Positions 14,070 to 55,934 of a stretch of DNA of 64,000 nucleotides are shown here, piece by piece. Positions within the stretch are counted from its first letter, which is position 1; every line of letters starts with the position of its first letter. Below the pieces are notes generated by a model, which made no database searches, was not told where the DNA came from, and saw nothing but the letters and a program-made list of their open reading frames with translations. This DNA comes from Andalucia godoyi And28. Its lineage: Eukaryota > Protista > Jakobida. The position numbers and the translations under genes are program-made. The stretch covers positions 48,915-112,914 of the forward strand of contig VRVR01000027.1 of the NCBI GenBank assembly GCA_009859145.1, given 5' to 3'.

Positions 14070-16534
14070 TCAGTCCGCTCTAAATGTAATGAACGGATTG
14101 GTTTGCTTTCGACCTTTCACAGGAGATTGAGGAGGACTGTCGTCGTCCTCATTGGGGTCCTGTCTAGTTGTTCGCTTGCGAAGCCCTGGCTGTGAGTCAT
14201 TGGAGCCGCTTGCCGCAAAATGCGATACTTCTCGAAGCGATGCAACTCCGGAACTGTTTGTGACAGCAGATCCGGGAGCAACAGACGTTCGCATATTATT
14301 GGGAGCTTCGCGATCATCCTCGTCACTGAAAGGGTCAGAATCTGTTTCGGTATTGTTGATGCTCCCGCTACTTTCATCATCCCCGTCCTCTGAATCTGTG
14401 TCGTCTGGAGCGTGGTGGGTATTGAGCTGACGACAGAACTCTTCCGTACGCACCCTCAACTGCTCCGCCGTCATCTGCTTCTGCAACGTTCCGTACAATG
14501 CAATGAGCTGATTGACAACGATTTTGTATGCTTCATCACGGTCAACGTGCTGTCCATGTCGTCGTTTCCACCCTTTGTGAGCTCCAAACACAGATACAGC
14601 TTTGATCGCTGTTTTTGATGCAAGTCGACTTCGTCGGTTGCTCACGATGAATCCGTAGTCTGAAAAGTTGCGTTCCGCAGCGACAGAGGATGCCGGCATT
14701 GCGAAAATCCTGTTCGCGATTCGGCTTAAGTTTTGATAGAACACCTCTGCTTCTTGCATTCCAAAGCGAACGTGGATGCATTGTTGTTTGGGCCCTCTCC
14801 TGTTCCAGCTCGGGAGTCATTGACTGCCGAAGGCCGAAAATATTGGAAACCCCGTTCTTCGAATCTGCCATGAAGCTGTTGTGTTCCTCCAACGCCTCTT
14901 CTGCTTCATTTTGCTTCACTTGCTTGCCAATGATGTCGTTCAGGGCAGTTATGCAACCCGCACTTGCACAGTGAACATATCGTGGATCGAGAGCAATTGA
15001 TGCGCGAATGATCGGATGACTCAGGAACTTCTTCCACGTTTGCAAAAGTTGCTGTTCCACAACCTTTGCGAACGGACGTCCCTGGGAGTTGGTCCTCTTC
15101 AAGAAGCTGTTTTGACGAATCCACATTAACAGACATTCCCAACACATAAAAATGTCTGATACTACTGCTCGATCGGATTCAAGTGCTCAGATTACCGATG
15201 AGATCTTGGATAGCAGATGAACAGCATCTGACAGGGTTTGTTTAGTGTCTGCTTTCAACACCCAGGACACCAGGTCTGGAGTGAATGCCTTTTTGACATC
15301 CAAATCGTTGACCAAGGCCACCGTCAGAGCCGAGAAGTTCTCCAGAACAGATCGAAGAGTCGCATGTTGGTAATCCTAACGCGTCTTAATGGCCTGTTTG
15401 AGCTTACGTTTCCATTCTTGCATGTTCTTCGGTTTGGCTGTCAGCAGAGAAGATCGATTAACGGTAGTGACAATTTCAGAGGTCCTCTGCAAGACAACAT
15501 CCAACATGTCCACAACAGCAACGATTTTCTTGATCAACAGAGATGTGATGTGTGCAGCACAACCAATTGTCCAGAGATCTGGACGATAGACTTGAAAGAT
15601 CCCTTCACATTTTCAGCATCGTAGAACGGTTGTCTGTGATGATTCCAACAAATGATCCATGTTTCAAGCCACACTCGTGTTCGATTTCGCTCATGTGCTG
15701 TTCGACCACTCTGGCAGTATATTGGGCTGTGACAGAGGCATCTTTTGTGTACACTCCTGTCCAGAAATGTGGCTCCGGAGTGACGATCACAATGTTCAAA
15801 ATGTGGTTCCTTTGATTGTCTGTCCAACCGTCGACAGTTAACACCTATCCGGGAGAACGCGCACATGCATCTTTCACTTTTTGTCTGGTTGATCTGTGTG
15901 CCTTCTCTAAAACTGTTGTGGCCAGTGTTTTTCGATCCAATCGCTCTCTAAACGGCCGCCGGTGAGCTGACTGGTTGGAAAGTTGAACATGAGTGGCATA
16001 TTCTTCTGCTTCAGCATCTAATGTAAGGTCTCGTTCGCTACGGTCATGCGGGACGCACCCAAGCATCGCAAAACACTCCCATAATGCATGATTGTCTAGA
16101 AATCGAAAGGGAATTCCAGACGTGATCATCGCCTCTCTAAGTGCGTACATGGCTTTATTCCACGCGAACAGACTTGAATTTGCTTTTGGGAAATCATATG
16201 TGTTCGCTGTCTTCAGTGAGGAGGTTGGTGACGACAGACCATTCGACGAGCCATGGGGCACATCAGGGTTGAATACTGCCAGTTCCACAGACACACGATC
16301 AACTTCTTCCTGAGACATTCCGAAATCTTGAGCCCACTCGCGAAGATGTTGTCGGACGTAGCTCAAATCCTGCAGTTTGGAGCAACGCCTTTCTTCATAG
16401 TGAACTGCCTGACGGGATCCGTTGTTCCCTTCCGGCAGAGGGTCGCCGCACAAACGGCATATCCCCCGCCCAAGATTATGCTGCTGCCTGTTTGGATGAT
16501 GAGCGAATGATCTCCACCAACAAAGTTTTCCCAT
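14070..16534 (-). mobile_element. Decayed hAT-superfamily transposase (BED zinc finger, DDE core, C-terminal dimerisation domain); pseudogene
   Basis: CRLC...HYEERRC (BED-like), SGIPFRFLDN, LTVDGWTD (D1), IITDN (D2), GCAAH (CxxH), ALDPRY, ASSVAAERNFS (E). Broken by in-frame TAG at 15845 and TGA at 15605, plus frameshifts. TIRs not identified. Confidence 0.88.
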
Positions 16535-17625
16535 TTTCAAATCATCATGTGGATTCCAAAACTCTTCCTTTTCTTCTTTTTCTCCTGCAGTAACCAGAAG
16601 ATCATCCGCGCATCACTAGGAGGTGTAAAATGATTGTGTCAGTCGGCATTAGAATTCCTCGCCGCCCCTCCTGAATCTTGGCCAAACCCGATGCGGATGC
16701 ATCATACAGCATGACAAGCACTGAATGGTGTTCATCGATCCGGGCAGAATACGGCTCATTGGATACAATTCCGTCTCATGCTGCGACGACAAATCATCAG
16801 AAATCCTGACTGTGACTGCTTTTCCAGTCGTGGTAGAAGGTAATTCGGCGTTTGCAACGTTGAAATAAATACTACACATCGTATCAGAATTTGACCGCGT
16901 TCGTCTGAGTGTCTGCAAAACGAATTCGTCGTCAAAGTGCAAGCTGTGGCAACAGAAAAAGGACGCCGACACGCAAAGTGCTGTGGAATCTAAAAGAAAA
17001 TCGACGAAAACGAACCACCATTTTTGGCAGACTACCGTAGGCGAGAGGCAGCATATGATCGAAGTCACGACTGGCAACGGGGCGACGACACAGTCTGATA
17101 CACCGCAGTCTGTTTGTCTTTCCGGATTTTGTCTGCTTTTTCTCTTCCTTCCGTTCCTTTTATGACTTGCATCTAGACACAATCTAGAATGTATTTCTTT
17201 TCATTCTCTTAATATTTTTTCTTCTTCGATCGTCCATCGTCTATCTTTTCATTTGGGTTTTCTTATTTCGTGAAAGTTTCCAAGAACGGTTTGTACATTG
17301 CGACACCGTGCCTTGTTGACAGTGCTTTGGAGTCCATCATACATCGTGTCGATCGTTGGATCTCCGCTGTTTTCGCCGCTCGACGCAGCCAGTGCCCAGT
17401 CTGGATCGCTCGGACATTCACTCGGACATTGGCACAGACATCGACGACGCTGACTTTGACTCTGACTCTGACCCGTCGTCTCGGCTGTTTGTTGAATCGC
17501 ACAATCGGCGCCGCAAAGTGAGACCACTGGTATTGATCCGACACCGCTCTGGATCAGGAGCGCCGTTTGCTGCATCGCCCAACAAATACTCGAACGTTCG
17601 GTCTTCGGATTCGCGAACTCCACTG

Positions 17626-36649: not shown

Positions 36650-39218
36650 TGAAGCTCCACCGTTCTTGCTCGTCTACGTTCGCCCGGAATGCGTTTTGGT
36701 TGTTATTGCACCATGTATTGCACGAAATCTCTTCTTATTATAATTCGTGGACGAGCTATCGACAAACCTGCTGCCTTTTCCGCTGGGTGACAACTCCGAC
36801 ACGGTCTGTTTTCAAGCTCACAATGTGAAAATTTAGGACTATCCAAATGAGCGCCGAAATATTTACCTGTTGCCAAATGCAATCGTTCAGCATCTCCATG
36901 CATGATGTGGTCCTTGAGAATGCCCAATCGTTGCGCCAGCATTCTAGCGATACCATTTCTCGACAGCAGTCTCGTACAAAAAGCATTGTCGTTGAGAGGA
37001 TTTGTTCAAGATCCAACCCAGCTGCCTTTCCCATAAATGGAAACGATCACATTACCTGGCCAATCCCGTTAGTCTTCCAGAACGTTGTCTCCGGAAACCA
37101 TAAAAACGTGCAAACCCATGTTTTTCAGAGTAGTGATTGTGCGTGCGCAAACTTCCCCAGTGGTAAAACGGATAGGTTTGCACCGGGTTTCCCGTGAGTG
37201 AGAGCACCTGTCGTATCAAAGCACATGATTCTGGATCAAGAGGCCAGTCCTAGATCTTTGCCACTGTTGATCAAGATGCCCAACGTCGCACCAACGCTGC
37301 AGCCAATAAGAACTGCAGTAGAAACAACCGAAGAGAAGACGGATGGATGGAGAGGTGAAGCAAGCACGGCATCTGACAATGTGACGCCCAGCCAGATAAA
37401 ATACCCAACAATCGCATGCGCGATAATTACTGGAACGAAAATGCCGGATATTCTGCTCGCGAGCCTCTGCGACGGAACCTTCGACGACGGCACATTCTCC
37501 ATGAGCCTCAAGATTTGTGAGAGAGTCGCATCATCACCGAGTCTCGACGCTCTGATGAACAGCATTCCTTCATGCACTACAGTACCACCCATAGCAGATA
37601 GGTTTGTGCGATTTTGAACTGGCATGGATTCTCGCGTTAGCACAGCTTCATCACAAGGAATTTTTCCGGCTATCTTCACTAGCGGAATGTCCCCTTCTTC
37701 AATTAATGAGGCAACAATCCGTTCATTGTCAATTGAGCGATCAATTCCTGTGACAGGAATGGCATTGGAAGGCTTCAAATCTAGAAGTTTGGTCATTGCT
37801 TCAGATGACTTGCTTTTGGCAACATTCTCCAGATATTTTCCCAACAGCATGAATGCGATCAGAGAAGCAGCCGCTTCAAAGAAAAAGTCACCTTGAAAGG
37901 AAGCATCTGCAGCCATGTAGGCCAAGCTGAAAACAGAATATATGTATGCCGCAAAAGTCCCAATAGAAATAAGAACGTCCATTGTGGTTGATCCTCCACG
38001 CAGGGCGATCAGCGCCTGCTTATGAAAAACAGTACCGCTGACAAATTGCACATACGAACTGAGAACAAATTGAACAAATCCCAACGACATCCACAAATAC
38101 CGATTCATGTGAATGGAAGGGACCCACACAAGCCCCATTGCAATGATCACGACCGGAATCGTGAATATCAACGAGGAAAGAAATCGTTTTCTCCACGATC
38201 TTATCTCCCGAGTTCGCAGTACCGATTCACGAATTCTTTCAGTCACCTGATATGCTGAAAAATTCGGAGAATGAGTAGCATTTAGAAGTATTCTTGGACC
38301 GGGCACCGGGGATCCGAGCTCTTTGGTCTCGGATGATGCAACCACGTGACATTTCTTTTCAACAGCACTTTTGTGTGCAGGAACATACTGGCCACAACCA
38401 CTCGAACTCAACGCATCTACTTTGACGACGTGTAACGGATTCGCCATAAAACAGGCCACTTTCACACTGTCAACACGTCGATGGCACGATACGCCTGATA
38501 CTTCGTAGCCGTATACGATAGGAGGTGCATTTTTGGTTTGAGTCTTCTGAATGACACTATCGGAGACAAAGAACGCCTCAAATCTACATTCAGTTATCGC
38601 GCCTGCAATAGTGTCATTGTTGGATAGTAAGAAATCATGAGACACTGTGACTTCGTCCAACAACACCGCCACATCTACTTGCGTAACACCAGGAAGAACC
38701 TTCACATCTCGAGAAATTGCTGCCGCGCAAGACGCACGTCTCATTCTTTTCACAGCAAACGTTAACCCATTCGAACAAGCTGTTGAAACTGCAGGTTGTT
38801 CATCGTGAGTAAAGGGTCTCTTGACAGAAACAACATCCGTTGCAACATTGACCGTGAAATTCAATCCGCTGACATCGATCTTGATGCCAAGTGCAGATAC
38901 CCAGGCAACTACAATCAACAAATTCCAATCGACTTCCTGCAAGAGATAAAGTTTGAGAGCCAGCCATTTTGCATCTTTCGCATCAGGATCAGAGCTCAAA
39001 TTCGGAACAGAAGCATTCACATGCCTTTGGGTCGGGTCGATAGTAACCTCGAGAACTCCGGAAATTCGAGAATCAGCTTGCAGGATGTTTTGCTTATCAC
39101 GCCCAGCCCAACTTGCGTCACCCACAATGATCAAGTGCTCGTCAATCATGTGAAGTAGAATTGCAGAGCAAATGGACAAGAAGCAAAAAACGGTAAAAAG
39201 AGAAGAATCAAGAGTCAT
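36650..39218 (-). pseudogene. Decayed paralog 2 of the P1B Cu-ATPase
   Basis: 660-aa ORF 37236..39218 is collinear with the intact gene (RMRRASC for GMTCASC, TRES for TGES, CPC segment deleted). An in-frame TGA precedes IMCFDTTGALTHGKP (for DKTGTLT), and disrupted remnants continue to DFVQYMVQ near 36700. Confidence 0.9.
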
Positions 39219-41274: not shown

Positions 41275-42096
41275 TCATTCCTGAGACAGATAGTCAAAGT
41301 TCTGCTTCTCGCATCTGTGAAATGAGAACATTGCGTTGTGTGGACAGATCTCAGTAATGATGAACCCACTTTTCCGAATCAGTGTCTCATGATCCCGGAT
41401 AAGGCTGATACCAGCCAACGGGTACAAAATACAAGTGCCCATTACAGAGAGGACGAATAAGACTCGATCCTTCCAGTTTGCCAACTTCTTACGACCATGC
41501 TCTACGAAATACGCCCGTCCACCAGTTCGCAAAACACGACGACACTCTTTGAGTGCTTCTAATGGGTGCCGGATCGAACACATCATGTCCACAGAAATGA
41601 TCGAGTCAAAGGTCTCGTCCGGGAATGGAAGATGTTCTGCGTCGGCCACAAGAAAATTTAATTTCAAGTCTGTTCTGTGAAGGTTCTTCGCCTTGATTTC
41701 AGCCAAATGCAGCATTCTTTCCGAAATATCAGTGAGAGTAACGACGGCACCTGCAGGGTAGAACTGGGTGTTGCTTCCCGTTCCTATCCCGATATCAAGA
41801 ACTTTCCCTTTCACAAGGGGTACATGGGCCTGACGGAGAGGCTGCATGTATGTTTTCTCCCAAGAAGCAAGCAACCCATCATACACGGGAGCCGCAAAAT
41901 CCCAAAACAACCTCGCAATGACAAATTTACCTGTTCCTAATTGTTCAACACGAAAAGAAGCAAATTCCTGTGACTGTGACGTCCCATTTTTTTTTTGAAT
42001 TTTTTGTGAAGCTTTGCATCTCTGTTCTACTTGAACTGGGTTTCGAGGTCTTCTGGGATGCAATTTCGAGAGGGTAGGGCTTGAGAAGAAGTTCAA
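41275..42096 (-). CDS. Class I SAM-dependent methyltransferase (Methyltransf_11; UbiE/METTL7-like); start uncertain
   Basis: VLDIGIGTG, TLTDISERML, VADAEHLPFPDETFDSII, CRRVLRTGG, FVEHG. No in-frame ATG before YMQPL, so an intron or frameshift may affect the 5' end. Confidence 0.87.
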   Translation of the reverse strand: MNFFSSPTLSKLHPRRPRNPVQVEQRCKASQKIQKKNGTSQSQEFASFRVEQLGTGKFVIARLFWDFAAPVYDGLLASWEKTYMQPLRQAHVPLVKGKVLDIGIGTGSNTQFYPAGAVVTLTDISERMLHLAEIKAKNLHRTDLKLNFLVADAEHLPFPDETFDSIISVDMMCSIRHPLEALKECRRVLRTGGRAYFVEHGRKKLANWKDRVLFVLSVMGTCILYPLAGISLIRDHETLIRKSGFIITEICPHNAMFSFHRCEKQNFDYLSQE

Positions 42097-42311
42097 GAAA
42101 TCATTTCACGATCAATCTGCCATGCACCTGGATCTGCAAACGTCATGTTCGGAATACGTTATCGGGATTTGGATCGGAATTCCGCTCAATCTCCGACAGC
42201 GGCGATTCACCAATATTTAAAGTTAAAAAATTGTTCTTCCAGGATCGTCCTCTTTTCCAATCCCTTCTAGAATTTTTTCCCACCTGTTTTATTGTTGGTT
42301 TGTACCCCATT

Positions 42312-45300
42312 ATGACGTACGAACATACATTCGTGGTGAGAGGCGCAACGTGCTCACATCATTGTCCCCAACGCATTTCCAAAGTCATTTCCGCTCTTCC
42401 AGGAGTGCTGTCCGTCGACGTTGATGTATCCACGTGGCAAGTTGTCGTGACGAGTACCCTCGTTGAGACCTTCACTCTCCTTTCTGTGGTGGCGGACGCC
42501 GGATATTCTGCAGGCCTTTCAGCTTCATCTTGTGTGCTGACAGCATACGAGAGCCAGCAACCAGACATTGAGAAGGCTCCATTGTTCGCGGTCCCGTCGA
42601 CGGCATTGCGCTCGGATCTTGGTGAGAATTCCAAAGTGTTGTGGGTGCATTACCAGTCGCAAGCGGATATTCCGACGACAATTCTTGGTGTTGATGGAAG
42701 TCCACTCTGGAAGCTGCGAACTTCGCATTCTCGTTCTTTTGCATTCCGGGCCGCAAATGTTGAAGAAGCCGTCCTGATGTCGCTTCCTGGTGTTCTTGCG
42801 GTGAAGGCTGTGGATTCTGAAACCTGTCTCTTGCAGGCTACAGTATCGGTTGGTTCGATCCTTGTGGCACGGGCGTTCGCGAGAGGCGTCGACCTCGCGG
42901 AAGCTGTGGTGGAAACATCCCCTTCGGATTCTCAGCATGTGCAAGCAGAGAAACCTGTTTCAGTTTCCGAAGTGCAACTCATCGCCACCAGGGACACACC
43001 GTCGCTGGTGTTTACCATCAAGGGTATGAGATGCCAACGCGGATGTGCCGACTACATATCTAGCCTGGTCCGAGAAGCAAAGTTGCACAATGTTTCGTCG
43101 GTAGAGTGTTCGTTTTCGACGGGTCTCTTGACCTTGTCTTTGGCAGAGGAGGGACCTTATGATCCAACTCTTCGCGAGCAGATCGCTTCCATCGTTTCTG
43201 CAGCAGGCTACCAGCTGGAGGCTGAAGATCAACGGAATTCTTCGGTTGAAGCAACGCCTTCGCAGTCTGATCGCGGTTCGAAAAGACAGTCAAGAGGATA
43301 TGAACATGTGGCCTCATCACTCTTCACAAGCGTCGATTCTCAGGTAGATGTGCCCCTTATCGAAGAATTCGCTTCGGTTTTTCAAGTGAAAGGTATGACA
43401 TGTGCGTCTTGTGCAGCAGCAATTTCACGTGCTGTCAATGCGCTTCCTGGCGTTGTCCATGTCGACGTTGCAGTGCTCCTAGATAAGGCGACTGTTTATC
43501 ATGATCCAAATTGTACTGATCGTGACAGAATTGCGCAAGCCATCATGGATGCGGGATACGAAGTGGAGTTCATTACCGACAGTGCACAGGAGAAATCTCG
43601 ATCCTCTGGAAAAGCTCCCATCATTCGTCGATATCGAGTGTCTGGTATGTCATGTCCCCATCACATTGAAGATGTGAAGGCAGCCCTTTTCATGGCAGAT
43701 CCGTCGCATGTTGTCAAAGTTGATGTCCTGGACTCCAAAGACAAGGATGGAGTTGTTGAAGGATGGCAGTTTCGGTCAGAGGAACAACGGGACGTCGTCG
43801 TCCATTCAGTTAGTGCCTCGCGAGAATCCGTTCCTCTAGGCCCACGTGCGCTTCTCAAGATCTTGTCCTCTCTAGAACTTTCTGCTTCTCTTGTGTCCAA
43901 TGTCGAAGACGAACGGATTCGCGAAGCTCTGATGCGTACAGAAGAAATCAAAATGTGGAAATCACGATTTCTCTGGTCTCTTTTGTTCACAATCCCTGTT
44001 GTCGTGATCGCAATGGGTCTTGTTTGGATTCCGGCCATCCACATGAATCGGAATGTGTGGCTTACGTTGGGGTTTGTCCAACTCGCACTCACGTCGTACG
44101 TCCAGTTTGTAAGCGGTGCTGTGTTTCATCGGCATGCCTGGCTGGCGCTGCGTTCCGGGTCCGCAACCATGGATGTTCTCATTTCGATTGGGACTCTTGC
44201 AGCATATTTGTATTCTGTCTTCAGTCTTGCTTATATGGTTGCGGTTCCGTCTTATCTCGGGGATTTCTTTTTCGAAACTGCAGCTGCTCTAATTGCCTTC
44301 ATGTTGTTGGGAAAATATCTCGAAAACGTGGCGAAGGGCAAGTCGTCGGAAGCGATGATCAAGCTTCTTGACTTGAAGCCATCAAAAGCATTTGTTATTT
44401 GTGGACTTGATCGATCGAATGTTGAGGAGATCGACGCGTCGCTGATTGAGGAAGGAGATATTCTTCGAGTGAGAGCGGGGGACAAGATGCCTTGCGACGG
44501 AGAAGTCGAGGATGGGTCTGCGTTGGTGGATGAATCCATGCTGACTGGAGAATCAATGCCAGTGCGGAAGCAAAAAGAAATGCCGATTATCGGAGGGACG
44601 ATTGTGCGAGAAGGAGTGTTGTTTATCAGGGCCGCCAGGCTCGGTGATGATTCCACGCTGTCACAAATGTTGAAGCTCATGGAGAACGCGCAGTCGTCGA
44701 AAGCGCCGTCGCAGCGGCTTGCCGACCGAATTTCCACCGTCTTTGTTCCGTGCATCATTGTTCTTTCCATCTTCGTGTTCTTCATCTGGCTGGGCATTAC
44801 GTTGTCTGGAACCGTGTCGACGGCCCCGCTGCACCCAGCAGTGTTCTCGTTGATTGTCGCGATCGCTGTGCTTGTTGTTGCCTGTCCCTGTGCGCTCGGA
44901 CTCGCGACACCTACTGCTGTTCTGGTTGGCTGTGGCGTGGGAGCCATGTTTGGAATCCTCATCAAGAGCGGCGAGGCGCTTGAATTTGCAGCAAGCTCGC
45001 GCATCGTTTGTTTCGACAAGACCGGGACTCTCACACAAGGGAAGCCTCGAGTAGAGACGCATGAGTTCTACGATTTTGTACAAGGAGACTCCACAGTCAT
45101 TGTAAGGAGCGAGATCTTGGAGCTGGTTCGTATTTTAGAGTCTCAGTCGGAGCATCCCATCGCCGCCGCCATTGTCGCCTTTATTGAGACCATGCAGGCG
45201 CAGACCGGCAAACCTCAAAGTGCATCGGAGTGCAAATCTTTCCAGACGTTTCCTGGGCAAGGAGTGACGGGCGTTTTCGAAATAGGTGAAGCAGAGGTGA

Positions 45301-46091
45301 ATGTGGTTGTGGGAACGGAACAATTCCTGATTTCGTGCGGTGCACGTTTTCCTTCAGCGTGCAGAAAGCAATTGTCTGCGAGCGTACAAGCGGGTTTGTC
45401 GATAGTTCTAGTATCTGTCCGAGGAGAAGTAGTCGCCCAGTTTGGTCTTGGTGACACGGTTCGGACGGATGCTGCTGCCACAGTTGCTGCCCTCGGAACC
45501 ATGGGAATGCGAGTGTACATGGTGTCTGGGGACAATGTTGCTGCAGCTGAGCGTGTCGGCAAGATTGTTGGGATTCCTTCCGAACGAGTGGTTGCTGGTG
45601 TTCTGCCCTCTGGCAAGATTGAGACTATTAGGCGCCTTCAAGCGGAAGGTATTCTGTTGCATGAAAGTGCAGGGCAAAAGAAACAGGGTAGTGCAATTCC
45701 CATCCGCCACAAGGTCATTCATGTTGGAGATGGATTGAACGATGCTCCGGCACTGATGCAGGCGGATGTGGGTGTTGCAGTCGCAGCTGGGACAGATGTT
45801 GCGCTGGAATCTGCTGGTATTGTCCTGATGAAAGACTGCATTTGGGATGTGGTCATTGCTATCCACCTAGCTCGGACAGTCCTCCGAAGAATCTGGATTA
45901 ATTATGGATGGGCTCTTGGGTACAACATTGTCGCCATCCCAATTGCGGCAGGTGTCTTGTATCCTCTTGTGCAGTATATGGTTCCACCGATTGCTGCGGG
46001 CGTGGCAATGGTCTTGTCCTCTCTGTCTGTCTTGTTGTCGTCTCTTCTTCTGAAGCGGTACCAGCCGCCCGGGAGCCGCGTGTTGATATGA
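42312..46091 (+). CDS. ATP7: P1B-1 Cu(I)-transporting ATPase (ATP7/CCC2/CopA-like) with four N-terminal HMA-like domains
   Basis: HMA motifs GATCSHHC, GMRCQRGC, GMTCASC, GMSCPHH; TGES, VVACPCALGLATP, DKTGTLT, SEHP, GDGLNDAPAL, GYN and AMVLSS (YN and MxxSS are P1B-1 signatures). Confidence 0.96.
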   Translation: MTYEHTFVVRGATCSHHCPQRISKVISALPGVLSVDVDVSTWQVVVTSTLVETFTLLSVVADAGYSAGLSASSCVLTAYESQQPDIEKAPLFAVPSTALRSDLGENSKVLWVHYQSQADIPTTILGVDGSPLWKLRTSHSRSFAFRAANVEEAVLMSLPGVLAVKAVDSETCLLQATVSVGSILVARAFARGVDLAEAVVETSPSDSQHVQAEKPVSVSEVQLIATRDTPSLVFTIKGMRCQRGCADYISSLVREAKLHNVSSVECSFSTGLLTLSLAEEGPYDPTLREQIASIVSAAGYQLEAEDQRNSSVEATPSQSDRGSKRQSRGYEHVASSLFTSVDSQVDVPLIEEFASVFQVKGMTCASCAAAISRAVNALPGVVHVDVAVLLDKATVYHDPNCTDRDRIAQAIMDAGYEVEFITDSAQEKSRSSGKAPIIRRYRVSGMSCPHHIEDVKAALFMADPSHVVKVDVLDSKDKDGVVEGWQFRSEEQRDVVVHSVSASRESVPLGPRALLKILSSLELSASLVSNVEDERIREALMRTEEIKMWKSRFLWSLLFTIPVVVIAMGLVWIPAIHMNRNVWLTLGFVQLALTSYVQFVSGAVFHRHAWLALRSGSATMDVLISIGTLAAYLYSVFSLAYMVAVPSYLGDFFFETAAALIAFMLLGKYLENVAKGKSSEAMIKLLDLKPSKAFVICGLDRSNVEEIDASLIEEGDILRVRAGDKMPCDGEVEDGSALVDESMLTGESMPVRKQKEMPIIGGTIVREGVLFIRAARLGDDSTLSQMLKLMENAQSSKAPSQRLADRISTVFVPCIIVLSIFVFFIWLGITLSGTVSTAPLHPAVFSLIVAIAVLVVACPCALGLATPTAVLVGCGVGAMFGILIKSGEALEFAASSRIVCFDKTGTLTQGKPRVETHEFYDFVQGDSTVIVRSEILELVRILESQSEHPIAAAIVAFIETMQAQTGKPQSASECKSFQTFPGQGVTGVFEIGEAEVNVVVGTEQFLISCGARFPSACRKQLSASVQAGLSIVLVSVRGEVVAQFGLGDTVRTDAAATVAALGTMGMRVYMVSGDNVAAAERVGKIVGIPSERVVAGVLPSGKIETIRRLQAEGILLHESAGQKKQGSAIPIRHKVIHVGDGLNDAPALMQADVGVAVAAGTDVALESAGIVLMKDCIWDVVIAIHLARTVLRRIWINYGWALGYNIVAIPIAAGVLYPLVQYMVPPIAAGVAMVLSSLSVLLSSLLLKRYQPPGSRVLI

Positions 46092-48141: not shown

Positions 48142-48466
48142 CGCCAGGATTCAAGACAACATCCCAAAAATCCTAGCTGTGGGATGAACGTTCGACAACC
48201 TGTGAGGCCTCTGCAGACAACACGAGAACAACTGGAATTCTAGCCGACACGTTGCACGATCGCGGAGGCAGTCATCAAACGGGGAATAGGATCAAGAACA
48301 GAAATCGAAGATTCCAGTAATTTCAAACATGAGATGTCGCGTGCCAGACCCTGTAAAACTGAAGTCTTCGCAGTCTAAACTCATTCTGTCATCGATCAAA
48401 AAGAAATGGAAAATTGTTTACCAAGAAGAGGTTTCGGTCTCCTCCAGGTGAGAAAAGAGAAACAGT

Positions 48467-48509
48467 CATGGGTAGGTTACTAACCGTACATATATGTAGG
48501 GGGTGCGGG
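48467..48509 (+). repeat. Left terminal inverted repeat (43 bp)
   Basis: Exact reverse complement of 55705-55747; begins CATG like P-element termini. Confidence 0.97.
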
Positions 48510-48850
48510 ATCACGAAAAAAATACGATCGTTTTTTCCGATCATCCATTATGCACGAAAAAAACTGACACCACACAACAATCATAAGACATCAATTTCAG
48601 AAAGTCACCCAAGCAGACCCGTTCACATGATTATCTAATGAATTGATCATTGATGGACTCATCCATCACGAATTTTGACAGTTCGACTCATTCGTGTCAG
48701 CTGAGTTGTTTGAGTCCGGTGCAAGCAGACAGACAAGCACGTTGCGTATCTTTGCTTGCTTGTTCTTTCTTTCTCTTTCGTTTACCACGTTTGTGTTTGC
48801 TTTGTTGTATTCCAGTACCGCCACAGGCGAGTGGATAACGAATCTACGAT

Positions 48851-51811
48851 TTACGTTCCTTCCGTTTCGCAATTGCCTGTTCGCGCAAAGAAAACGCAAA
48901 CAGGGCGGTAATTTGGACCGAAGTAATGCCGTGTCCATATCGATGTGGTTCCGGCAACAACTCTCCACCGAGGCTGAGATATTGCGCTGTCATAGGCCAG
49001 AAGTTGCATTTTGCCACCGATTGGCACACGAATAATACACAGGAAATGTTCCGTATCGTTGTACATGATCCCACAAACCTTCCAACAGGATCCTTTTTCA
49101 CAACGAACTAAATCAATGTTCTCCAGCTGATTCACGTCCAGTGCGTCTTCAGCAAGTGGTGCTCTTGAAAAGTGTTGTCTTTGAACCTTGTCTTGTTGTG
49201 GTTCTCGCTTCCTTTCTTCTGCAATACGCAACTTTTCGGTGCGGACGCTATCCAAATACGGAGACGCAAATTCAACGGCTGCGAATGCTCCATCCTCTGT
49301 TGACAGTGCTTCTGATAACTTTCGCATCAAATCCAGGGGGCGCTCCACGACTACCGTTAGATACTTGTCTTCTGCTTTGCAGAAGAACAAAGATCTATTC
49401 CAGTATAAGGGTGCCAACATGAGAGTAGTTGCGCAGGTCATCATGTCCATCGGTCTTTGCAATATCCAATCTGGTTTCACGAAACCTGTTTCACGTATCC
49501 AGTCAATCATCAGGTCGATTAACACGATGTCTTTCTTGGACCTTCTTTCTGTAATGATTTCCAAAATCATTTTCGATAAAATTCCATCGATTGCGCATTT
49601 CGATGCATGTAAATCATCGAGCACGCTTGTACTCGTGTTACACATGCATCCAATGATACATACAACGGGGGTCCATACCGAGCAACTGTGGAAGAATCCA
49701 ACATTGCCTCCGTTCTTGAAAGTAACATTGATGGTGGACGTGATCTGTTCCTTTTTCAGATTGAACACCTCAATGTTGCCCAAGATTGTAGAATGCGTAC
49801 GAGCTTCGGATTCGGAAGTTGAAGAGCGGATTCCTGCAAGAGGGTGTTGCGAGCCAGACAGCCTGAGAGATTTGGACGGTTTCAAAAATCCATCTAGAGT
49901 TCCCCGTGTACCAGAAAACGGGAGGTGAAGGTCATTCGAGAGAGGCGGCGTATCGGGAGAAGCAACCACCCTTAATGCGTGGGGAATCGCTGAAACGCCG
50001 TTATCACTATTCCTTGTCTTTGTCAGGCCATCATCCGTTAAAATATTCGTGCGTTCAGTTTGTTCACAACGGGTGCAGGGATCTTTCACACTGAACTTCT
50101 CCGATTTCTCTCCAATTCCAGGATTTTCCAAGGACGGATTCACAGAACTACCATCTGTCTCCGTTCCTTCCCTCATTGTATCCATCGAAATTCGAACACT
50201 TAAGGGTTGGCATGAACCAGGTATGTCCGTCAGAATCTGCCAATCTTCCGCAAGATTTGCAATTGTAAACGGGCCAAAATCATTCAGGCACACAACCTGA
50301 GAAGACTTGTCGATGTCATCGCACAAATACAGGCTATGATCAGATGCACACCTACCATACCGACATAACTGCACTTTTCGAGTGGACACTTCAATAACTC
50401 TGTCGACAAAGTACACAGCATCTCGACTGTCAGAGAATATCCACTCGCGAACAGGTATTTGAAGAGCTGAATCGACAACTTCGCTGATGAGTGGAAAAGA
50501 CTGATCAGATGCATCATCAATTGCAAGGAATCTGACCAAAGAGTCGTACATTTGATTTAGACATGATTCTGTTAAAGCCAGAAAATTGTGTTCATCTGAA
50601 CGACCGCGGTCTTGCAAATTGGAAGCAGGACGGAAAGCAGCCACGGACAAAATCCGGCTCCCATCGAAATTGATTCTGGCGTTTCGTTGAACGCTATGAA
50701 TGCAATTTGTTTCACAATACAATAGGCCTCTGCATTCAAAGATATTACGGAACCGTAGAGAGTTGAACACTACACCTGTGTTCTTCGTAGTGTTTTCCTT
50801 CGATTTGATTACATTCTCCAGAAAGCACACGCAAATCAAGTTCTTCGTTAACAACTGATGGACCTCCTCCAGTACTGTTAATGATGGTGTTCTTGAAAGC
50901 ACATTTGTTATGTGTGTAATCAACCGTGCAGTCACCATAGGAAGATCCTGCACTATTGACGGCTTTTGTCCGACCTTGTTGGCAGCTGCTACCGCATCTG
51001 CTTGAGGTACCCATACAACGACCACTTGACCTTGTGCAAACCTATCGCTTCGCATGTCGAATACGTCTTCAAAGTCGCGGCTATTGGCTTCTTTAAATCG
51101 CAAACTTCGCAAAGAAGACAAGGTGAATCGATCGGCAATTCGTTCGACAACTCTATCCAACAAGTGTTGAATCGGAACGATGGTCTCATCCTTGGGTTCA
51201 CAATCTCCTGACGGCACCACGATGTGATCCGGAAAAAGTTTCCTCGTTGTCATTTTTTTCACCTCTTCATTGCAATCTGGAACATCTGGAAGATTGAACG
51301 CATTAACTACAGAGAAAAGATGCTGGGTATCGAAAACACTCGAGTGCCGTCGGGCCACATCGACATCCAAAATATGACGAGAGTGCGAGACTTCCTCGGA
51401 AGCCCATTGGGCATTGAAATCATATTTGTAAATGCACGATATCGTCTCGAGTGACAGCTCTGTCTCGGATACCACTTTTGCACGACCTCGTATCTTCCGC
51501 ATTGCAAAGAATTTCTTGAGCCTATCGTACAGCTTCGGAACCCATTTCTTGACAGCAGCAATCCCTACACTAGCGCCTTTGTTAACATGTTCAACGATAG
51601 ATCCCTGAATACTGATAAAGGGCTGTTTCTTGTTCGACAATTGATCATGCGACAAAAAACACCCAAAAAATTCGTGCAATTTCTCACTAGAAAAGACGGG
51701 GGGGATCAGAGGACCGTTCCGTGAGAATATCCAGGATTGACGAGGCTCTTTGCACGAATACCTTTTGGTCATGCCGCACCTTGATATGGGCAGCCTTATT
51801 CTTTCCGGCAA
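48851..51811 (-). CDS. Transposon-borne ORF (986 aa), probably the C-terminal continuation of the transposase; ends in a USP/papain-like peptidase-fold domain
   Basis: Overlaps the transposase stop. Removing one C from the C7 run at about 51698-51704 fuses the frames (SDPP-VFSSEK). The C-terminus has FKNGGNVGFFHS (Cys-box-like, Gly at the Cys position), RPMD, YNDTEHFLCIIR...AYDS (His-box-like) and VCVFFAR. Confidence 0.7.
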   Translation of the reverse strand: MPERIRLPISRCGMTKRYSCKEPRQSWIFSRNGPLIPPVFSSEKLHEFFGCFLSHDQLSNKKQPFISIQGSIVEHVNKGASVGIAAVKKWVPKLYDRLKKFFAMRKIRGRAKVVSETELSLETISCIYKYDFNAQWASEEVSHSRHILDVDVARRHSSVFDTQHLFSVVNAFNLPDVPDCNEEVKKMTTRKLFPDHIVVPSGDCEPKDETIVPIQHLLDRVVERIADRFTLSSLRSLRFKEANSRDFEDVFDMRSDRFAQGQVVVVWVPQADAVAAANKVGQKPSIVQDLPMVTARLITHITNVLSRTPSLTVLEEVHQLLTKNLICVCFLENVIKSKENTTKNTGVVFNSLRFRNIFECRGLLYCETNCIHSVQRNARINFDGSRILSVAAFRPASNLQDRGRSDEHNFLALTESCLNQMYDSLVRFLAIDDASDQSFPLISEVVDSALQIPVREWIFSDSRDAVYFVDRVIEVSTRKVQLCRYGRCASDHSLYLCDDIDKSSQVVCLNDFGPFTIANLAEDWQILTDIPGSCQPLSVRISMDTMREGTETDGSSVNPSLENPGIGEKSEKFSVKDPCTRCEQTERTNILTDDGLTKTRNSDNGVSAIPHALRVVASPDTPPLSNDLHLPFSGTRGTLDGFLKPSKSLRLSGSQHPLAGIRSSTSESEARTHSTILGNIEVFNLKKEQITSTINVTFKNGGNVGFFHSCSVWTPVVCIIGCMCNTSTSVLDDLHASKCAIDGILSKMILEIITERRSKKDIVLIDLMIDWIRETGFVKPDWILQRPMDMMTCATTLMLAPLYWNRSLFFCKAEDKYLTVVVERPLDLMRKLSEALSTEDGAFAAVEFASPYLDSVRTEKLRIAEERKREPQQDKVQRQHFSRAPLAEDALDVNQLENIDLVRCEKGSCWKVCGIMYNDTEHFLCIIRVPIGGKMQLLAYDSAISQPRWRVVAGTTSIWTRHYFGPNYRPVCVFFARTGNCETEGT

Positions 51812-54128
51812 TATTACCCACGAATCCGTAATTTTCAGGGTTGATCCGCATATCTGCCAGTTGCATGATCAACGGACAACATCTACCAAATTCTGCAGCG
51901 GAGAAATTAATGCGAGCATCTGGTTTGACACCGAATCCGCGACACGCACTCCAAAGTCCTTCTATCTGAAGCTGTTGCAGACGACGCATCACGAATTCGG
52001 AAGACTCCTTAACATCGATGATACCGTGTTGAAGGGCGTATGAAACAGCCAACGAAGTATTTAAAATGCCGTGAAAGATTGACTCACACCCAACACGAAT
52101 GCTCATCTCTGGACCTGTCTTGCCTTGCAAGCCACACAGGCTTTGGTCTGATGCGACAGACCATAATCTGAGAATGGAAATTCCTACTCCGCCAAGAAAG
52201 GCGAGCCACTTAAACGACACAGGACCTGAGTATAAGAACGATTCCAGTAAAGTAGACACCATAACTGAAAACAACAGGGTTCCACCTATCTCGGACTGAA
52301 GCTCGGCAGACGGAGGACTGTCGAAGAGAGCTTTCAACTCGAGACACGATCGCAATGAGAAAATACGCATCGCAGAGTCAGACCGTTGACCATATTGTTG
52401 AGAATCAGGTGTGCGGAGATCTCCTGGATTTATGAATCCTTTCAGATTCTCAATCGTCCCGAGAAATGAAATGGATATTCCTTCACCCTGACTGAAACCA
52501 AGCGACGGCAGTCCAGAGTTATCTCCCACGCAGTGTGACCGAGCCAGGCGGACGAAGTGATCAGCGTCGTACAACCAGATAACAGGCATTGCATCAACAC
52601 GGGTTTTCCACTTTGATCTTGGCCGTATTCGACAGAAGCTGAAGTACCACGGAGCATTCAATCCAAGAGGAATACAATTTTCCTTCAGAATGAAATGAGG
52701 GCATCCCAAATGCATGCCAGCTTTTCTTTCCTTCCCATCAAGATCACTAATGAAACAAAAATGGGCTGCTCCGCCACTGTGCAGTTCCGACGATAGATTA
52801 TCCCACTGATCAGCAATTGTTTCTCCCGTGTAGGAATTATTCGTCAACCAAGTCAACAACGGCTTGGTCTCACCGCTCGACGGAAACAAGCACAAAAATT
52901 GATACAAATGATCCGCCAACTCAACCTTATTAAACAGCGCATCGAGAGACGCACTCTGATGGGAAGCGGCTTGAGATAGGATAATCTGAGTCATTTTGTC
53001 AAAATTTGTGGCATCAACGAACGGAGTCCATTCGTCAAATTTTGCTGGCATGACTGCCCCAACTACTAGACCCGTACGCCGGTCAAACTCCAGGTTCTTC
53101 TGACACGCAGTCCCATCTCCAGACACCGCAACAAGAGCCCGACGCGATCCGTCATTTGTTGAATATTTGATATTGCCGGGGTGCATGGAAAGAGTCAAGG
53201 GCTTCCCAAAGAAAATACTCTGAGAAACATCGTGACGGCGCATATACTTCAATGCACTCTCAGAGGGGAAAGCACTCCTCAGCTGAGAGTACAGAAATCG
53301 AAAAGCAGATGGCGATTTTGAATAAAGATAGAACGCCAACTGTCGGATAACATCCGGAAAACGATGGCCATTTGATTTGCGCATGACATTTGTGGCCCAA
53401 GTATCCACGAGAATAACAAAACACTTGTGTACCTCTGCATCCTCGTCAGACATTGAGTCTAAACGTCGAAGCACTTGAGAAAAAGACAGAAAAGCGGTTC
53501 GAAAAAGCCGCTTATCCAGAAATGGCAAGAGAGACTGCAATCGCGCCACTTTGTGCAAGGCCCGACGAAGAGAGGATTGTAAATGCGCAATTTTGGACGC
53601 CATGTCTTTGACATGCACTGCCAACTGCTCGCGGGACATGTGACTGTACCGGTTCTCATTGAATAGCCCGAGAGTTTCATCCATGTCTTGTTCATCTTCT
53701 GGAATTGCAAGATGAGGGTGCAAATTACGCAGGCAACGAGCAACTCTCTTCTTAAAACTGTCCGTCGACGAAGGCTCGATGAGACTCCAACACTTGCTGC
53801 ATACTCCTAGACGCAAGTCAACGTCACTTCCAATGCACTCTACATGATGGATGCTGCCGCGAAGATTCTCTCCCGCTACCACAACTTTTTGGAACGGGCG
53901 GGGCTCCGTCATTTCGTGTGGAATTCCACCCTGGTGCAATTTTCGAAAATGTCTAATCCAAAGACCAGGACAAGTGGAAAATGGAACGGAATCTAATTTC
54001 AAGGATTTTGCGCAAAAATCGCGAACAGCAGGATGCTTCGACTCGAACACATGAGTGTCTGCAAGACAATCTGGACTCAGACAGAGCGGGCACGCAAGTT
54101 TTCCTGGGACGTCACCTCGGACGAACAT
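51687..54128 (-). CDS. P-element-family transposase
   Basis: THAP-like CPLC...WIRHF; coiled coil; RFPDVIRQLAFYLYSKSPSAFRFL...FPSESAL; SGDGT...LEFDRRTGLVVG (D1); FISDLDG (D2); DADHFVRLARS (D-x2-H); SAMRIFS; RLQQLQIEGLWSACRG (E). Confidence 0.9.
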   Translation of the reverse strand: MFVRGDVPGKLACPLCLSPDCLADTHVFESKHPAVRDFCAKSLKLDSVPFSTCPGLWIRHFRKLHQGGIPHEMTEPRPFQKVVVAGENLRGSIHHVECIGSDVDLRLGVCSKCWSLIEPSSTDSFKKRVARCLRNLHPHLAIPEDEQDMDETLGLFNENRYSHMSREQLAVHVKDMASKIAHLQSSLRRALHKVARLQSLLPFLDKRLFRTAFLSFSQVLRRLDSMSDEDAEVHKCFVILVDTWATNVMRKSNGHRFPDVIRQLAFYLYSKSPSAFRFLYSQLRSAFPSESALKYMRRHDVSQSIFFGKPLTLSMHPGNIKYSTNDGSRRALVAVSGDGTACQKNLEFDRRTGLVVGAVMPAKFDEWTPFVDATNFDKMTQIILSQAASHQSASLDALFNKVELADHLYQFLCLFPSSGETKPLLTWLTNNSYTGETIADQWDNLSSELHSGGAAHFCFISDLDGKERKAGMHLGCPHFILKENCIPLGLNAPWYFSFCRIRPRSKWKTRVDAMPVIWLYDADHFVRLARSHCVGDNSGLPSLGFSQGEGISISFLGTIENLKGFINPGDLRTPDSQQYGQRSDSAMRIFSLRSCLELKALFDSPPSAELQSEIGGTLLFSVMVSTLLESFLYSGPVSFKWLAFLGGVGISILRLWSVASDQSLCGLQGKTGPEMSIRVGCESIFHGILNTSLAVSYALQHGIIDVKESSEFVMRRLQQLQIEGLWSACRGFGVKPDARINFSAAEFGRCCPLIMQLADMRINPENYGFVGNIAGKNKAAHIKVRHDQKVFVQRASSILDILTERSSDPPRLF

Positions 54129-54282
54129 CGTCAAAAGGTGTCGGAGAAACTTTTGAACAAGCTTCATATTGTAATCGAAAACACTTTCAACAATTACTGT
54201 CTGCCAAAACGAAGAAAAGCATGTTAGTGGATTTGGAGAAGAAAACTTAAAGAAAAGAAATAAAAAACAAAACCAAAATCCT

Positions 54283-55425
54283 CTAGGTAGGTCGTTTGAA
54301 CAACATCGCTGAAATAGTCAATTGCCTTGTCCGACTGTTTCCGAACGACCAAGCGCAAACACGAAGCTTCTTGATTACCTTCTTTGAACGAAATGCACTC
54401 TCAAGCCTCGAGGCAACATAGAGACTGCCTCGAGTTGTTGTTGTGATGTTCAAATGCAAAGGTGGGCAAACGAATCTTCGCATCTCAATGCCCGAATCCT
54501 TTTCCCGAACCTTCAACAACCGAAATTGCAGAGATGCAAGGAATTGACGAACCCATTCCGTATCAGAATGCAAACCGATCTTGTGGAGTCGCAACGTGCT
54601 GTTAACTCTATCAAGAAAAGTTGAAACAAAGTTCGCGGCCTGCGGCAACGACTCCAAATCAGATTGAGTGACATCCAACTCACCAATGATATCCTCAGGA
54701 AGTGATTCATCCTCAGCAGATTCCGATTCGGACGCCGGCTGTTGTCCAACGTGCGAAAGCTCATCTGGAGAAGATAGTCCCATTCCATCAATGATGGGAT
54801 CGCTGTGAAGTTCAGGTGATTCAGTTGAGGATTGCGAAGTTGACGATCCAACGAACCTAGTATCAGAGGAGGATGCTGAACAACTGGTCTGAGCAAAGCA
54901 TACGGATTGATCTATTTCACTACTCGGTTTAGAACGCTTGGCAAGTGGTTCCGAAACTGCGCGACCATCTCGTTGTAAAAAGGCAGCCAGGGGTCCCTGA
55001 ACTCGTCGTGCAACGCAGATGAACCACACACCAACAGCACGCGTCTCAGAGAAAGGATCGGGAAGGAGAGCTTCAAAGCCAACGAGAGACGCAGAAAACA
55101 ATTTGTACTCAGGGATGACGTCTGGAACCTGGACCGAAAACTCTTCAGGTTGGTGTGAACAGAGTCCGTGAGGAAAAGAACAATCAATTTGGTATTCTTC
55201 GTGCAGTCGCAGAGATTGAAGCGTCTCATTGAACTGAGCTTCAAAGGGTGCACGGCCGGCATTCATGGCATTCTTGATCCCAAAATACCCATGAAACTCC
55301 ATGGACTCCACTCTGAATCGCGCGCCGGTGTGCCCAAGAACAAGATATTGCTTGTTTGACGAAGTATCCCTGCGAATGAAAACAAGATTCACTTTAACCT
55401 GTTGGGTAGTCGCGGTCAACTCCAT
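54283..55425 (-). CDS. Transposon-borne hypothetical protein (about 380 aa), upstream of the transposase
   Basis: ORF inside the TIRs; likely ATG at 55425 (MELTATTQQV). Globular N- and C-terminal parts are separated by a Ser/Glu/Asp-rich linker. Confidence 0.6.
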   Translation of the reverse strand: MELTATTQQVKVNLVFIRRDTSSNKQYLVLGHTGARFRVESMEFHGYFGIKNAMNAGRAPFEAQFNETLQSLRLHEEYQIDCSFPHGLCSHQPEEFSVQVPDVIPEYKLFSASLVGFEALLPDPFSETRAVGVWFICVARRVQGPLAAFLQRDGRAVSEPLAKRSKPSSEIDQSVCFAQTSCSASSSDTRFVGSSTSQSSTESPELHSDPIIDGMGLSSPDELSHVGQQPASESESAEDESLPEDIIGELDVTQSDLESLPQAANFVSTFLDRVNSTLRLHKIGLHSDTEWVRQFLASLQFRLLKVREKDSGIEMRRFVCPPLHLNITTTTRGSLYVASRLESAFRSKKVIKKLRVCAWSFGNSRTRQLTISAMLFKRPT

Positions 55426-55436
55426 TCTGCGGCGCG

Positions 55437-55462
55437 TATGTGTGTGTGTGTATGTGTGTGTG
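55437..55462 (+). repeat. (TG)n microsatellite
   Basis: gtatgtgtgtgtgtatgtgtgtgtgtg. Confidence 0.8.
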
Positions 55463-55704
55463 TGCAAGCAAACTGCAAATGCTGTGAATTGGAAACAAAC
55501 AATAGAAATGATGAGATGGGTGCTTGCATGTTGCACCGCCCACGCCCCACACTCCACAGCCAGGTTGTCCATTCTGAGCCCTTTTTTTAAAAAAATTGTT
55601 GAAAATTCAATCCGGTTGATGCTAGATTTTAGCATCAATTAGAATCACGAAAAAAAAATACCGGGCCCGCATTTAGTCACAAAAATTATTGGTCTGCGTT
55701 CAAA

Positions 55705-55747
55705 CCCGCACCCCCTACATATATGTACGGTTAGTAACCTACCCATG
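55705..55747 (-). repeat. Right terminal inverted repeat (43 bp)
   Basis: cccgcaccccctacatatatgtacggttagtaacctacccatg followed by TSD gaaacagt. Confidence 0.97.
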
Positions 55748-55934
55748 GAAACAGTACGAGTTGCGAAGAGCATAAAGTTTGATTTATTTTTGGAACAATC
55801 TTTCTAAAATTGGTCACAACGCCACCGGAAAATATCCTATTTCAAGTACACCGCACAGTTGAAGTTGCTGAGGTTTGGTATCAACCTCAGGATCCGGGTT
55901 GCAATTGCTTATTTCAGTTTGCATAAAGAAAACA

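Follow-up and report, generated by a model that had tools for sequence, protein, structure and literature searches.

In a 64-kb stretch of the genome of the jakobid Andalucia godoyi And28 (64,000 nucleotides of contig VRVR01000027.1, all of which was analysed and which we call the window) lies a transposable element of 7281 bp (7.3 kb, measured between its target site duplications) that is probably a class II cut-and-paste transposon of the autonomous type, inserted recently between genes of a compact genome and representing a deeply divergent P-superfamily lineage. The element has two genes on one strand, an upstream open reading frame (ORF) of ~380 amino acids (aa), termed ORF1, and a transposase of ~1770 aa, and it is a cut-and-paste transposon of the DDE (Asp-Asp-Glu) type and no new kind of element. 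P elements, a textbook transposon that also serves as a major tool of genetics, are known mostly from animals, and jakobid genomes are compact and poor in transposable elements. Our search of the literature found no description of P-like elements in jakobids, and a survey of another superfamily lists Jakobida as lacking genomes (PMC8101967).

The element is bounded by a pair of 43-nt terminal inverted repeats (TIRs) that are 100% complementary and both start with CATG, and each of them directly adjoins one copy of the same 8-bp target site duplication (TSD), GAAACAGT (Table 1). A preliminary description of this DNA, made from its letters, had reported perfect CATG-starting TIRs, an exact 8-bp TSD and palindromes inside the TIRs, and all three are borne out, the palindrome being TACATATATGTA in each TIR (48487-48498 and 55716-55727). 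Within the window the first 20 nt of the TIR occur at these two places only, where 0.00 occurrences would be expected by chance. The TIRs of canonical P elements likewise start with CATG. Insertion of canonical P elements also duplicates 8 bp of target, and their internal transposase-binding sites are spaced asymmetrically (PMC7776569). The repeated motif that had been noted near both ends as 'atcacgaaaaaaa' is real but is better defined as an exact 11-mer, CACGAAAAAAA, whose three copies are the only exact ones in the window and all fall within ~100 bp of the ends. Because all three are read on the plus strand, these subterminal repeats are direct and not inverted, and their spacing from the TIRs is asymmetric (2 bp at the left end versus 48 bp at the right). 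Neither the TIRs (86 nt) nor the TSD copies (16 nt) differ at any position (43/43 and 8/8 matching positions), which, together with frames that are open bar one base, indicates a very recent insertion, as had been proposed, and at 7281 bp the element is indeed unusually large for a P element. Its GC content (0.459) is near that of the rest of the window (0.486).

All long ORFs of the element are on the minus strand. The first of them in the direction of transcription, ORF A, is the ORF1 of this copy and has a Ser/acidic-rich middle part. It is followed by ORF B, in which a Cys/His-rich N-terminal region (C26, C34, H45, C66, H107, C111 and C126) and a coiled-coil-like stretch precede what are, as judged from sequence, a P-type helix-turn-helix (HTH; approximately residues 255-305) and an RNase H-like core. 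The motifs that had been claimed for the transposase, D/D/E and D-x2-H, are confirmed as D351, D475, E736 and D534-x2-H537 of ORF B; all of these residues are invariant across the alignment of the family described below, and D534xxH537 is separated from E736 by 202 aa. The third frame, ORF C, is listed as 48851-51811 on the minus strand (986 codons, in a frame open from 51868) and overlaps the frame of ORF B at a run of seven C residues, at which this copy has 1 extra base compared with its relatives. A three-way alignment with these relatives stays homologous through the junction of ORF B and ORF C, with L812, L815, G835 and D841 invariant. Because the homologue of ORF B plus ORF C is one ORF in both relatives, ORF C is the C-terminal half of the transposase and no extra gene. 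Accordingly, the ~4 kb of additional coding sequence reported inside the TIRs is present, as ORF A and ORF C, but the wording 'extra ORFs' is not supported, as ORF C belongs to the transposase and ORF A lies at a position conserved across the family. Conservation in ORF C is confined to islands, chiefly residues 1001-1050 of the fused protein (DR-F...RF...F-D-x-F-D-x-RS).

Taken singly, ORFs A, B and C matched no Pfam model at E ≤ 1 (THAP and P/THAP9 models included), no PDB sequence and no NCBIfam model; an alignment of ORF A with retroviral integrase cores (E ~0.3) was taken as noise. Protein searches by word index, with ORF B, ORF C or the family profile as query, matched only the window's own record. 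The C-terminal extension was not significantly similar to the C-terminal domain of Drosophila P transposase (P value 0.043), and an AlphaFold2 model of ORF C, built from a three-row multiple sequence alignment (MSA), was too poor to use (predicted local distance difference test score, pLDDT, 31.3).

Table 1. Coordinates of the features of the element, in window positions, from left to right.
Feature	Positions	Strand	Basis or remark
TSD, left copy, GAAACAGT	48459-48466		same 8-mer directly adjoins both TIRs
TIR, element 3' end relative to the genes; start CATGGGTAGGTTAC	48467-48509	+	43/43 complementary to 55705-55747
Subterminal 11-mer CACGAAAAAAA, copy 1	48512-48522	+	2 bp inside left TIR; candidate transposase-binding site
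Subterminal 11-mer CACGAAAAAAA, copy 2	48553-48563	+	exact match
ORF C, C-terminal part of transposase, ~950 aa	48851-51697	-	colinear with C-terminal halves of P0002 and P0003
ORF B, N-terminal part of transposase, 826 aa	51687-54167	-	HMMER, alignments, hhalign, consensus versus Pfam, block-sliding versus Drosophila P
C7 homopolymer (G7 on plus strand), site of frame shift	51698-51704	-	one C fewer gives a single 1771-aa ORF
E736 of ORF B	51960-51962	-	codon position
D534-x2-H537 of ORF B	52557-52568	-	codon position
D475 of ORF B	52743-52745	-	codon position
D351 of ORF B	53115-53117	-	codon position
ORF A (ORF1), 380 aa from ATG 55425	54283-55425	-	frame open to 55638; more ATGs at 55635 and 55572
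(GT)n-type microsatellite, (GTATGTGTGTGTGT)x2	55436-55463		in open frame just upstream of ORF A ATG 55425
Subterminal 11-mer CACGAAAAAAA, copy 3	55646-55656	+	48 bp inside the other TIR
TIR, element 5' end relative to the genes	55705-55747	-	inverted-repeat pair with 48467-48509
TSD, right copy, GAAACAGT	55748-55755		identical to left 8-mer

The element belongs to a family with at least two further members. When ORF B was used as the query of an exhaustive HMMER search covering 1.84 billion cluster representatives, five other proteins were returned in all, two of them strong matches (P0002, 1511 aa, E 2e-78; P0003, 1345 aa, E 5.5e-70) and three of them short proteins with weak matches (P0004-P0006, E 3e-6 to 6e-4). 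P0002 and P0003 are encoded on two contigs, L001 and L002, of one Joint Genome Institute (JGI) metagenome. In L002 the element is complete: it measures 6786 bp, has perfect 47-bp TIRs that begin with CATGGGGGGGTAACC (CATGGGGGGGTAAC; CATGGG...) and is flanked by an exact 8-bp TSD, AGTTTCTT, at 1797-1804 and 8591-8598 of the contig, so that an 8-bp TSD is found in two members of the family. L001 starts exactly at a terminus, CATGGGGGGTTAG (CATGGGG, positions 1-7), and stops 5 nt before the other terminus (6975-6997); its TIRs are short and imperfect (~13-15 nt). The coincidence of the contig borders with the element termini suggests that the assembler broke at repeat borders and that the element is multi-copy in the source organism. 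Termini of the form CATGGG..GGT(T)A are common to the window element, L001 and L002. In L002, too, a subterminal repeat is found, a same-strand 9-mer with two copies at one end and a single copy at the opposite end, which differs in sequence from CACGAAAAAAA; subterminal repeats are thus element-specific, on the same strand and in a two-plus-one arrangement in both elements. When written in gene orientation, the TSDs of the window element (ACTGTTTC) and L002 (AGTTTCTT) share the pentamer GTTTC, which might hint at a target preference (n = 2; the chance of such sharing is ~2-3%).

Both metagenomic elements have the same layout as the window element, namely an upstream ORF1 on the same strand (290 aa in L001 and 317 aa in L002) followed by one uninterrupted ORF of ~1600 aa, and ORF C aligns in colinear fashion with the C-terminal half of each of P0002 and P0003. 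The upstream ORF1 is conserved in position, orientation and size class across the three elements. The ORF1s of L001 and L002 are weakly similar to each other (E 5e-5); that of the window element, ORF A, has no significant similarity to either by BLASTP or hhalign and shares with them only its position and a short [FY][LV]D[RH]V[NR]xxL motif. Were either of the upstream ATGs of ORF A (55635 or 55572) to be used, the (GT)n microsatellite at 55436-55463 would encode HTHTYTHTHT. The family alignment retrieved no further members from metagenome and viral contigs, the TIR 20-mer had no match in metagenome contigs, and tblastn and blastn searches of the rest of the window found no second copy or fragment of the element. 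An exact look-up of ORF B and the flanking host proteins gave no record in the assemblies searched, which were collections without the host genome; subtelomeric 'transposon/viral-like' scaffolds were left out of the A. godoyi assembly (PMC7050145).

Five blocks of the family alignment resemble P and THAP9 transposases: an HTH block (N-V-x-R-K...S-P-S-A-[FY]...[FL]-P-S), a block around the first aspartate (D1; S-[EG]-D-x-T...[FY]-D), one around the second (D2; F-[IV]-S-D-L-D-x-K), a D-x2-H block (W-x-Y-D-x-D-H-x-x-R) and an E block (Q-x-x-[IV]-E-x-L-[WF]-x-x-x-R-G-[FY]-G). This likeness was tested by computation, with a reference D. melanogaster P transposase that had been checked against PDB entry 6P5A (568/569 residues of chain A, and residues 617-751 in chain B). 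The three short proteins P0004-P0006 bridge the gap between the family and P transposases. With the three family members they aligned by hhalign at 98.5% probability (E 3e-15, 215 columns), the HTH, D1 and D2 blocks of the two groups being aligned with one another, and with Drosophila P they aligned over residues 170-358 at a score of 41.0, compared with a maximum of 20.5 in 50 shuffles (P value 1.4e-4). Each of the three has as its top Pfam match either PF12017 (HTH) or PF21787 (RNase H N), below the curated cutoff, and those matching both models do so in the correct order. The downstream ORFs of the bridging loci L003 and L004 were uninformative when compared with Pfam. L004, the contig of P0004, also has minus-strand ORFs at 2946-4541, 5438-6073 and 6460-6603 for OTU-protease, chromo-domain and PWWP-domain proteins, which places the bridging group in a eukaryotic genome.

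Consensus sequences of hidden Markov models (HMMs) gave a similar result. The consensus of the family plus the bridging proteins matched PF12017 at E 2.9e-5 and 24.8 bits, over the curated cutoff of 23, with PF21787 immediately downstream; for the consensus of the family alone, PF12017 was the top match among 24,736 models (E 0.0027, under the cutoff), and it was the best match of all three consensus sequences. We also slid ungapped block profiles, made from the three family members only, along the whole of Drosophila P (~730 positions) and compared the scores with those from 2000 shuffles. The best registers placed D351 on D230, D475 on D303, D534-x2-H537 on D339-x2-H342 and E736 on E531, which are the experimentally defined catalytic triad and signature motif of the Drosophila enzyme (PMC8230255). 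The observed score was attained by none of the 2000 shuffles for the E block, by 4 for D2, by 12 for D-x2-H and by 505 for D1. The sequence Y-D534-A-D-H537 is invariant in the family and has its best match at residues 334-350 of Drosophila P, and a greedy hhalign alignment likewise pairs all three catalytic residues with those of Drosophila P. In addition, the 202-aa spacing between the D(2)H motif and the catalytic glutamate is close to the 192 aa of Drosophila P and the 199 aa of THAP9 (PMC8230255). Overall, the core of the family is homologous to the P catalytic core, and the P affinity that had been proposed for the element gains support, albeit as a very remote one, from the bridging group, the match of the consensus to Pfam and the exact-register matches at the catalytic residues. 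On these sequence comparisons we consider it likely that the element represents a very divergent lineage of the P superfamily.

Several observations weigh against this assignment. Neither P0002 nor P0003, nor any single protein of the element, reaches a Pfam model at E ≤ 1, whether THAP, P/THAP9 or any other; the window protein stays below the thresholds of the TNP-like RNase H N, GBD, RNase H C and Tnp_P_element_C models; and PF21787 appears at sub-threshold level only, in the consensus and the bridging proteins. Searches of profiles from two alignments against PDB failed to retrieve 6P5A, and direct hhalign comparison of the family with Drosophila P is weak (P value 0.058 for the family alone and 0.011 with the bridge sequences added). 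In the register test the block boundaries were chosen after the alignment had been seen, the D1 block is not significant on its own and the ungapped HTH block misses its expected position on Drosophila P. The AlphaFold2 model of ORF B (six-row MSA) has a mean pLDDT of 38.7 and is unusable, so that the RNase H fold is a prediction from sequence; at this low confidence, the model has strands just before D351 and D475 and places E736 in a helix. The two aspartates are 124 aa apart as against 70-73 aa in P and THAP9, and the subterminal repeats are direct rather than inverted. Finally, the Pfam search of the element proteins detected no THAP (C2CH) domain, and the conserved N-terminal Cys and His residues (C26, C34, H45 and C66; H107, C111 and C126) do not fit the pattern C-x2-4-C-x35-53-C-x2-H. 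This region is probably another kind of zinc-binding, DNA-binding domain.

The preliminary description of the element as 'intact, possibly active' is uncertain, because the 1-nt frameshift in the C7 run splits the transposase and this copy is thus not strictly intact. The +1 shift reflects either an error in sequencing the homopolymer or a mutation that has inactivated the copy very recently. Reads of the 454 type are prone to homopolymer-length errors. The A. godoyi genome (~20 Mb, compact and intron-poor) was assembled from 454 data, though polished with Illumina reads (PMC7050145), and since nothing but a single base of the C7 run disturbs the transposase, the shift may be such an error. 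That the shift is genuine is an account we take seriously while leaning somewhat against it: this copy would then be freshly dead and non-autonomous, or else ORF B alone would make a truncated protein like the 66-kDa P repressor. The shift is, after all, present in the sequence as given, and the 826-aa product appears to be recorded as a protein in its own right, listed as encoded by the window; ORF B also stops ~90 aa past E736, which recalls the 66-kDa repressor of Drosophila, whose end comes soon after the catalytic core (PMC7776569). Apart from the nature of the assembly, what speaks for an error is that the frames on both sides are fully open (826 and 986 codons) and that the TIRs and TSD are perfect, and for the same reasons any inactivation would have been extremely recent.

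For the mechanism of the element we favour ordinary DDE cut-and-paste transposition. If the enzyme works as P transposase does (PMC7776569), its HTH and the Cys/His region at its N terminus would bind the subterminal CACGAAAAAAA repeats and the inner part of the TIR. The asymmetric spacing of the repeats (2 bp versus 48 bp) would tell the two ends apart, and the enzyme would pair them. The predicted RNase H-like DDE core (D351, D475 and E736), which appears to be interrupted by an insertion domain of ~200 aa starting at D-x2-H, would then excise the element and join its 3' ends to target DNA at positions 8 bp apart, which would account for the duplicated GAAACAGT. In the relatives the C-terminal 950 aa belong to the same polypeptide as the core, and they are specific to this lineage. 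That long open frames for ORF1 and the C-terminal extension have been kept in all three elements argues for function, and we speculate that both assist or regulate transposition, in the manner of other two-gene DNA transposons. The binding sites and these roles, like the activity of the element, are inferred.

A bolder account, which we hold to be unlikely, is that these elements form an ancient and hitherto unrecognised clade of 'giant' P-like transposons, in which the core is permanently fused to a module of ~950 aa with a novel function (for example a second enzymatic or chromatin-targeting activity), a dedicated ORF1 is present, the DNA-binding domain is independent of THAP and recognises direct subterminal repeats, and the C7 frameshift is perhaps a regulated switch. 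If so, the presence of the clade in a jakobid (Discoba) would move the origin of P elements towards the last eukaryotic common ancestor or would reveal long-range horizontal transfer, and the C7 run might switch between a truncated, repressor-like product and the full enzyme, analogous to IVS3 retention in Drosophila.

Returning to the two-gene transposon that we prefer, we weighed whether it could instead be a P-like element of ordinary size with captured host or foreign cargo, in which ORF A and ORF C would be mere passengers. Neither ORF has a recognisable domain, the C-terminal half is for the most part poorly conserved and ORF C is a separate frame in this copy, all of which would suit such cargo. 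However, both relatives have the homologue of ORF C and the transposase in a single frame, the alignment with them runs colinearly through the site of the frameshift, and an upstream ORF1 is present in all three elements; moreover, ORF C had no match in the word-indexed protein search and neither ORF A nor ORF C matches anything elsewhere in the window. We therefore regard captured cargo as very improbable.

Equally little credit can be given to a short spliceosomal intron that would join ORF B to ORF C with no need for an indel. Frame-restoring GT...AG pairs are present, and the example 51761->51683 (79 nt), with AAG|GTATTC at its donor and a pyrimidine-rich acceptor, fits the intron range of A. 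godoyi (55-756 bp; PMC7050145). Hundreds of such pairs arise by chance, however, and a single-base change in a homopolymer is a simpler account of the shift. The segment to be removed also aligns with coding residues of the uninterrupted relatives, including the invariant L812 and L815, so splicing would delete residues that are coding and conserved in them, which makes the intron unlikely.

Least probable of all is that the element belongs to another superfamily with 8-bp TSDs (hAT, Zisupton/KDZ, Novosib or a short-TSD MULE) and acquired P-like motifs by convergence among [C/D]-x2-H DDE enzymes: a [C/D](2)H motif with an insertion domain is indeed common to several superfamilies (PMC8230255, citing Yuan and Wessler), searches of the element revealed no THAP domain and the direct statistical link to P is weak, but no hAT dimerisation, KDZ, MULE or other transposase model of Pfam appears at E ≤ 1, the sole transposase models that do appear are the P-specific PF12017 and PF21787, four blocks are in exact register and colinear with the catalytic residues of P, and the D-x2-H motif and CATG termini are both as in P. 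At the same threshold, hAT dimerisation domain PF05699 and related hAT models, as well as KDZ transposase and CxC zinc-cluster domains, are absent from the element proteins and the consensus sequences alike. PF05699 was readily found (E 2.7e-9) in a window ORF at 14070-14759 on the minus strand, so this method would have revealed a hAT transposase in the element.

The window in which the P-like element lies is gene-dense, with long intron-free ORFs that encode, among others, P-type ATPases, an ABCG transporter, a DHHC protein and ephrin-receptor-like repeat proteins. The insertion is intergenic, downstream of the ABCG gene (~850 bp from its stop codon) and upstream of a gene of the Zn2Cys6 type (~1.1 kb away), and no sizeable ORF crosses the reconstructed empty site. 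The region of the PF05699-bearing ORF (14070-14759), which has same-strand neighbours at 14542-15147 and 15845-16540 with no Pfam match, is probably a decayed hAT transposon and thus a second DNA-transposon superfamily in the window. A 275-aa ORF at 10690-11517 (minus strand), in which an N-terminal GIY-YIG nuclease is unusually paired with two CCHC zinc knuckles, may have its origin in a mobile element. The 695-aa ORF at 7533-9620 (minus strand) has no Pfam match and is 90% identical over 134 aa to A. godoyi ANDGO_07272, a similarity which suggests that it belongs to a multi-copy or repeated gene family. Two ORFs for P-type ATPases of the heavy-metal type (HMA domain), at 42081-46091 (plus strand) and 37236-39218 (minus strand), are separated by ~3 kb; one of them is complete (1336 aa), whereas the other (660 aa) has the HMA and E1-E2 ATPase parts only and may be a truncated paralogue or pseudogene.

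Overall, the P-like element is unusual in four respects: its transposase is more than twice the canonical length, it has a partner ORF, it has no recognisable THAP domain and the natural members of its lineage are missed by curated models. It extends the P superfamily into an almost unsampled branch of life, bears on the age of the P/THAP9 lineage and, through the double-length transposase, the partner ORF and the lack of a recognisable THAP domain, widens the architectural range of the superfamily. The three complete or near-complete examples, with their TIRs, TSDs and genes, of a lineage missed by domain models should also aid the annotation of transposable elements in protists. To our knowledge jakobids have no genetic tool, and a possibly active DNA transposon is a candidate for one. 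Current understanding is not overturned by the element, since its mechanism is most likely that of an ordinary DDE cut-and-paste transposon.

Among known systems, hAT elements resemble the window element in their 8-bp TSD and in a DDE core that contains an x2-H motif and an insertion domain, but they carry C-x2-H where the window family has D-x2-H, and no hAT model was found in the element. In PIF/Harbinger (ORF1 and transposase), MuDR (mudrA and mudrB) and CACTA (TnpA and TnpD) elements the transposase is likewise accompanied by a second element-encoded protein, which evolves fast and is conserved mainly by position; the likeness is one of analogy only, as these are unrelated superfamilies with other TSD lengths and no sequence similarity. 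The nearest detectable relatives outside the family are the bridging proteins P0004-P0006, from eukaryotic contigs in Logan assemblies, which differ in that the called proteins are of 329-387 aa, are without the N-terminal Cys/His region and are nearer to canonical P. Vertebrate THAP9 and zebrafish Pdre2 share the DDE triad and the D(2)H motif, with 199 aa between D(2)H and E in human THAP9 versus 202 here, and zebrafish P-like copies also have an 8-bp TSD and TIRs (PMC8230255, PMC7776569); however, the zebrafish TIRs are 13 bp, THAP9 proteins (~900 aa) have a canonical THAP domain, and these systems have neither a second gene nor a 950-aa C-terminal extension. In comparison with the Drosophila P element (PDB 6P5A), the window element is much longer (7.3 kb versus 2.9 kb), as are its transposase (~1770 aa versus 751 aa), its TIRs (43 bp versus 31 bp) and the spacing of its two aspartates (124 aa versus 73); it has in addition an upstream gene, direct subterminal repeats, no detectable THAP domain and no evident introns, and its identity to the Drosophila protein is too low for detection by Pfam or HMMER from single sequences. 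The two elements are nonetheless alike in their 8-bp TSD, perfect TIRs starting with CATG and asymmetrically spaced internal repeats (PMC7776569, PMC8230255), and in a domain order that runs in both from the HTH through D, D and D-x2-H to an insertion domain of ~200 aa and the final E.

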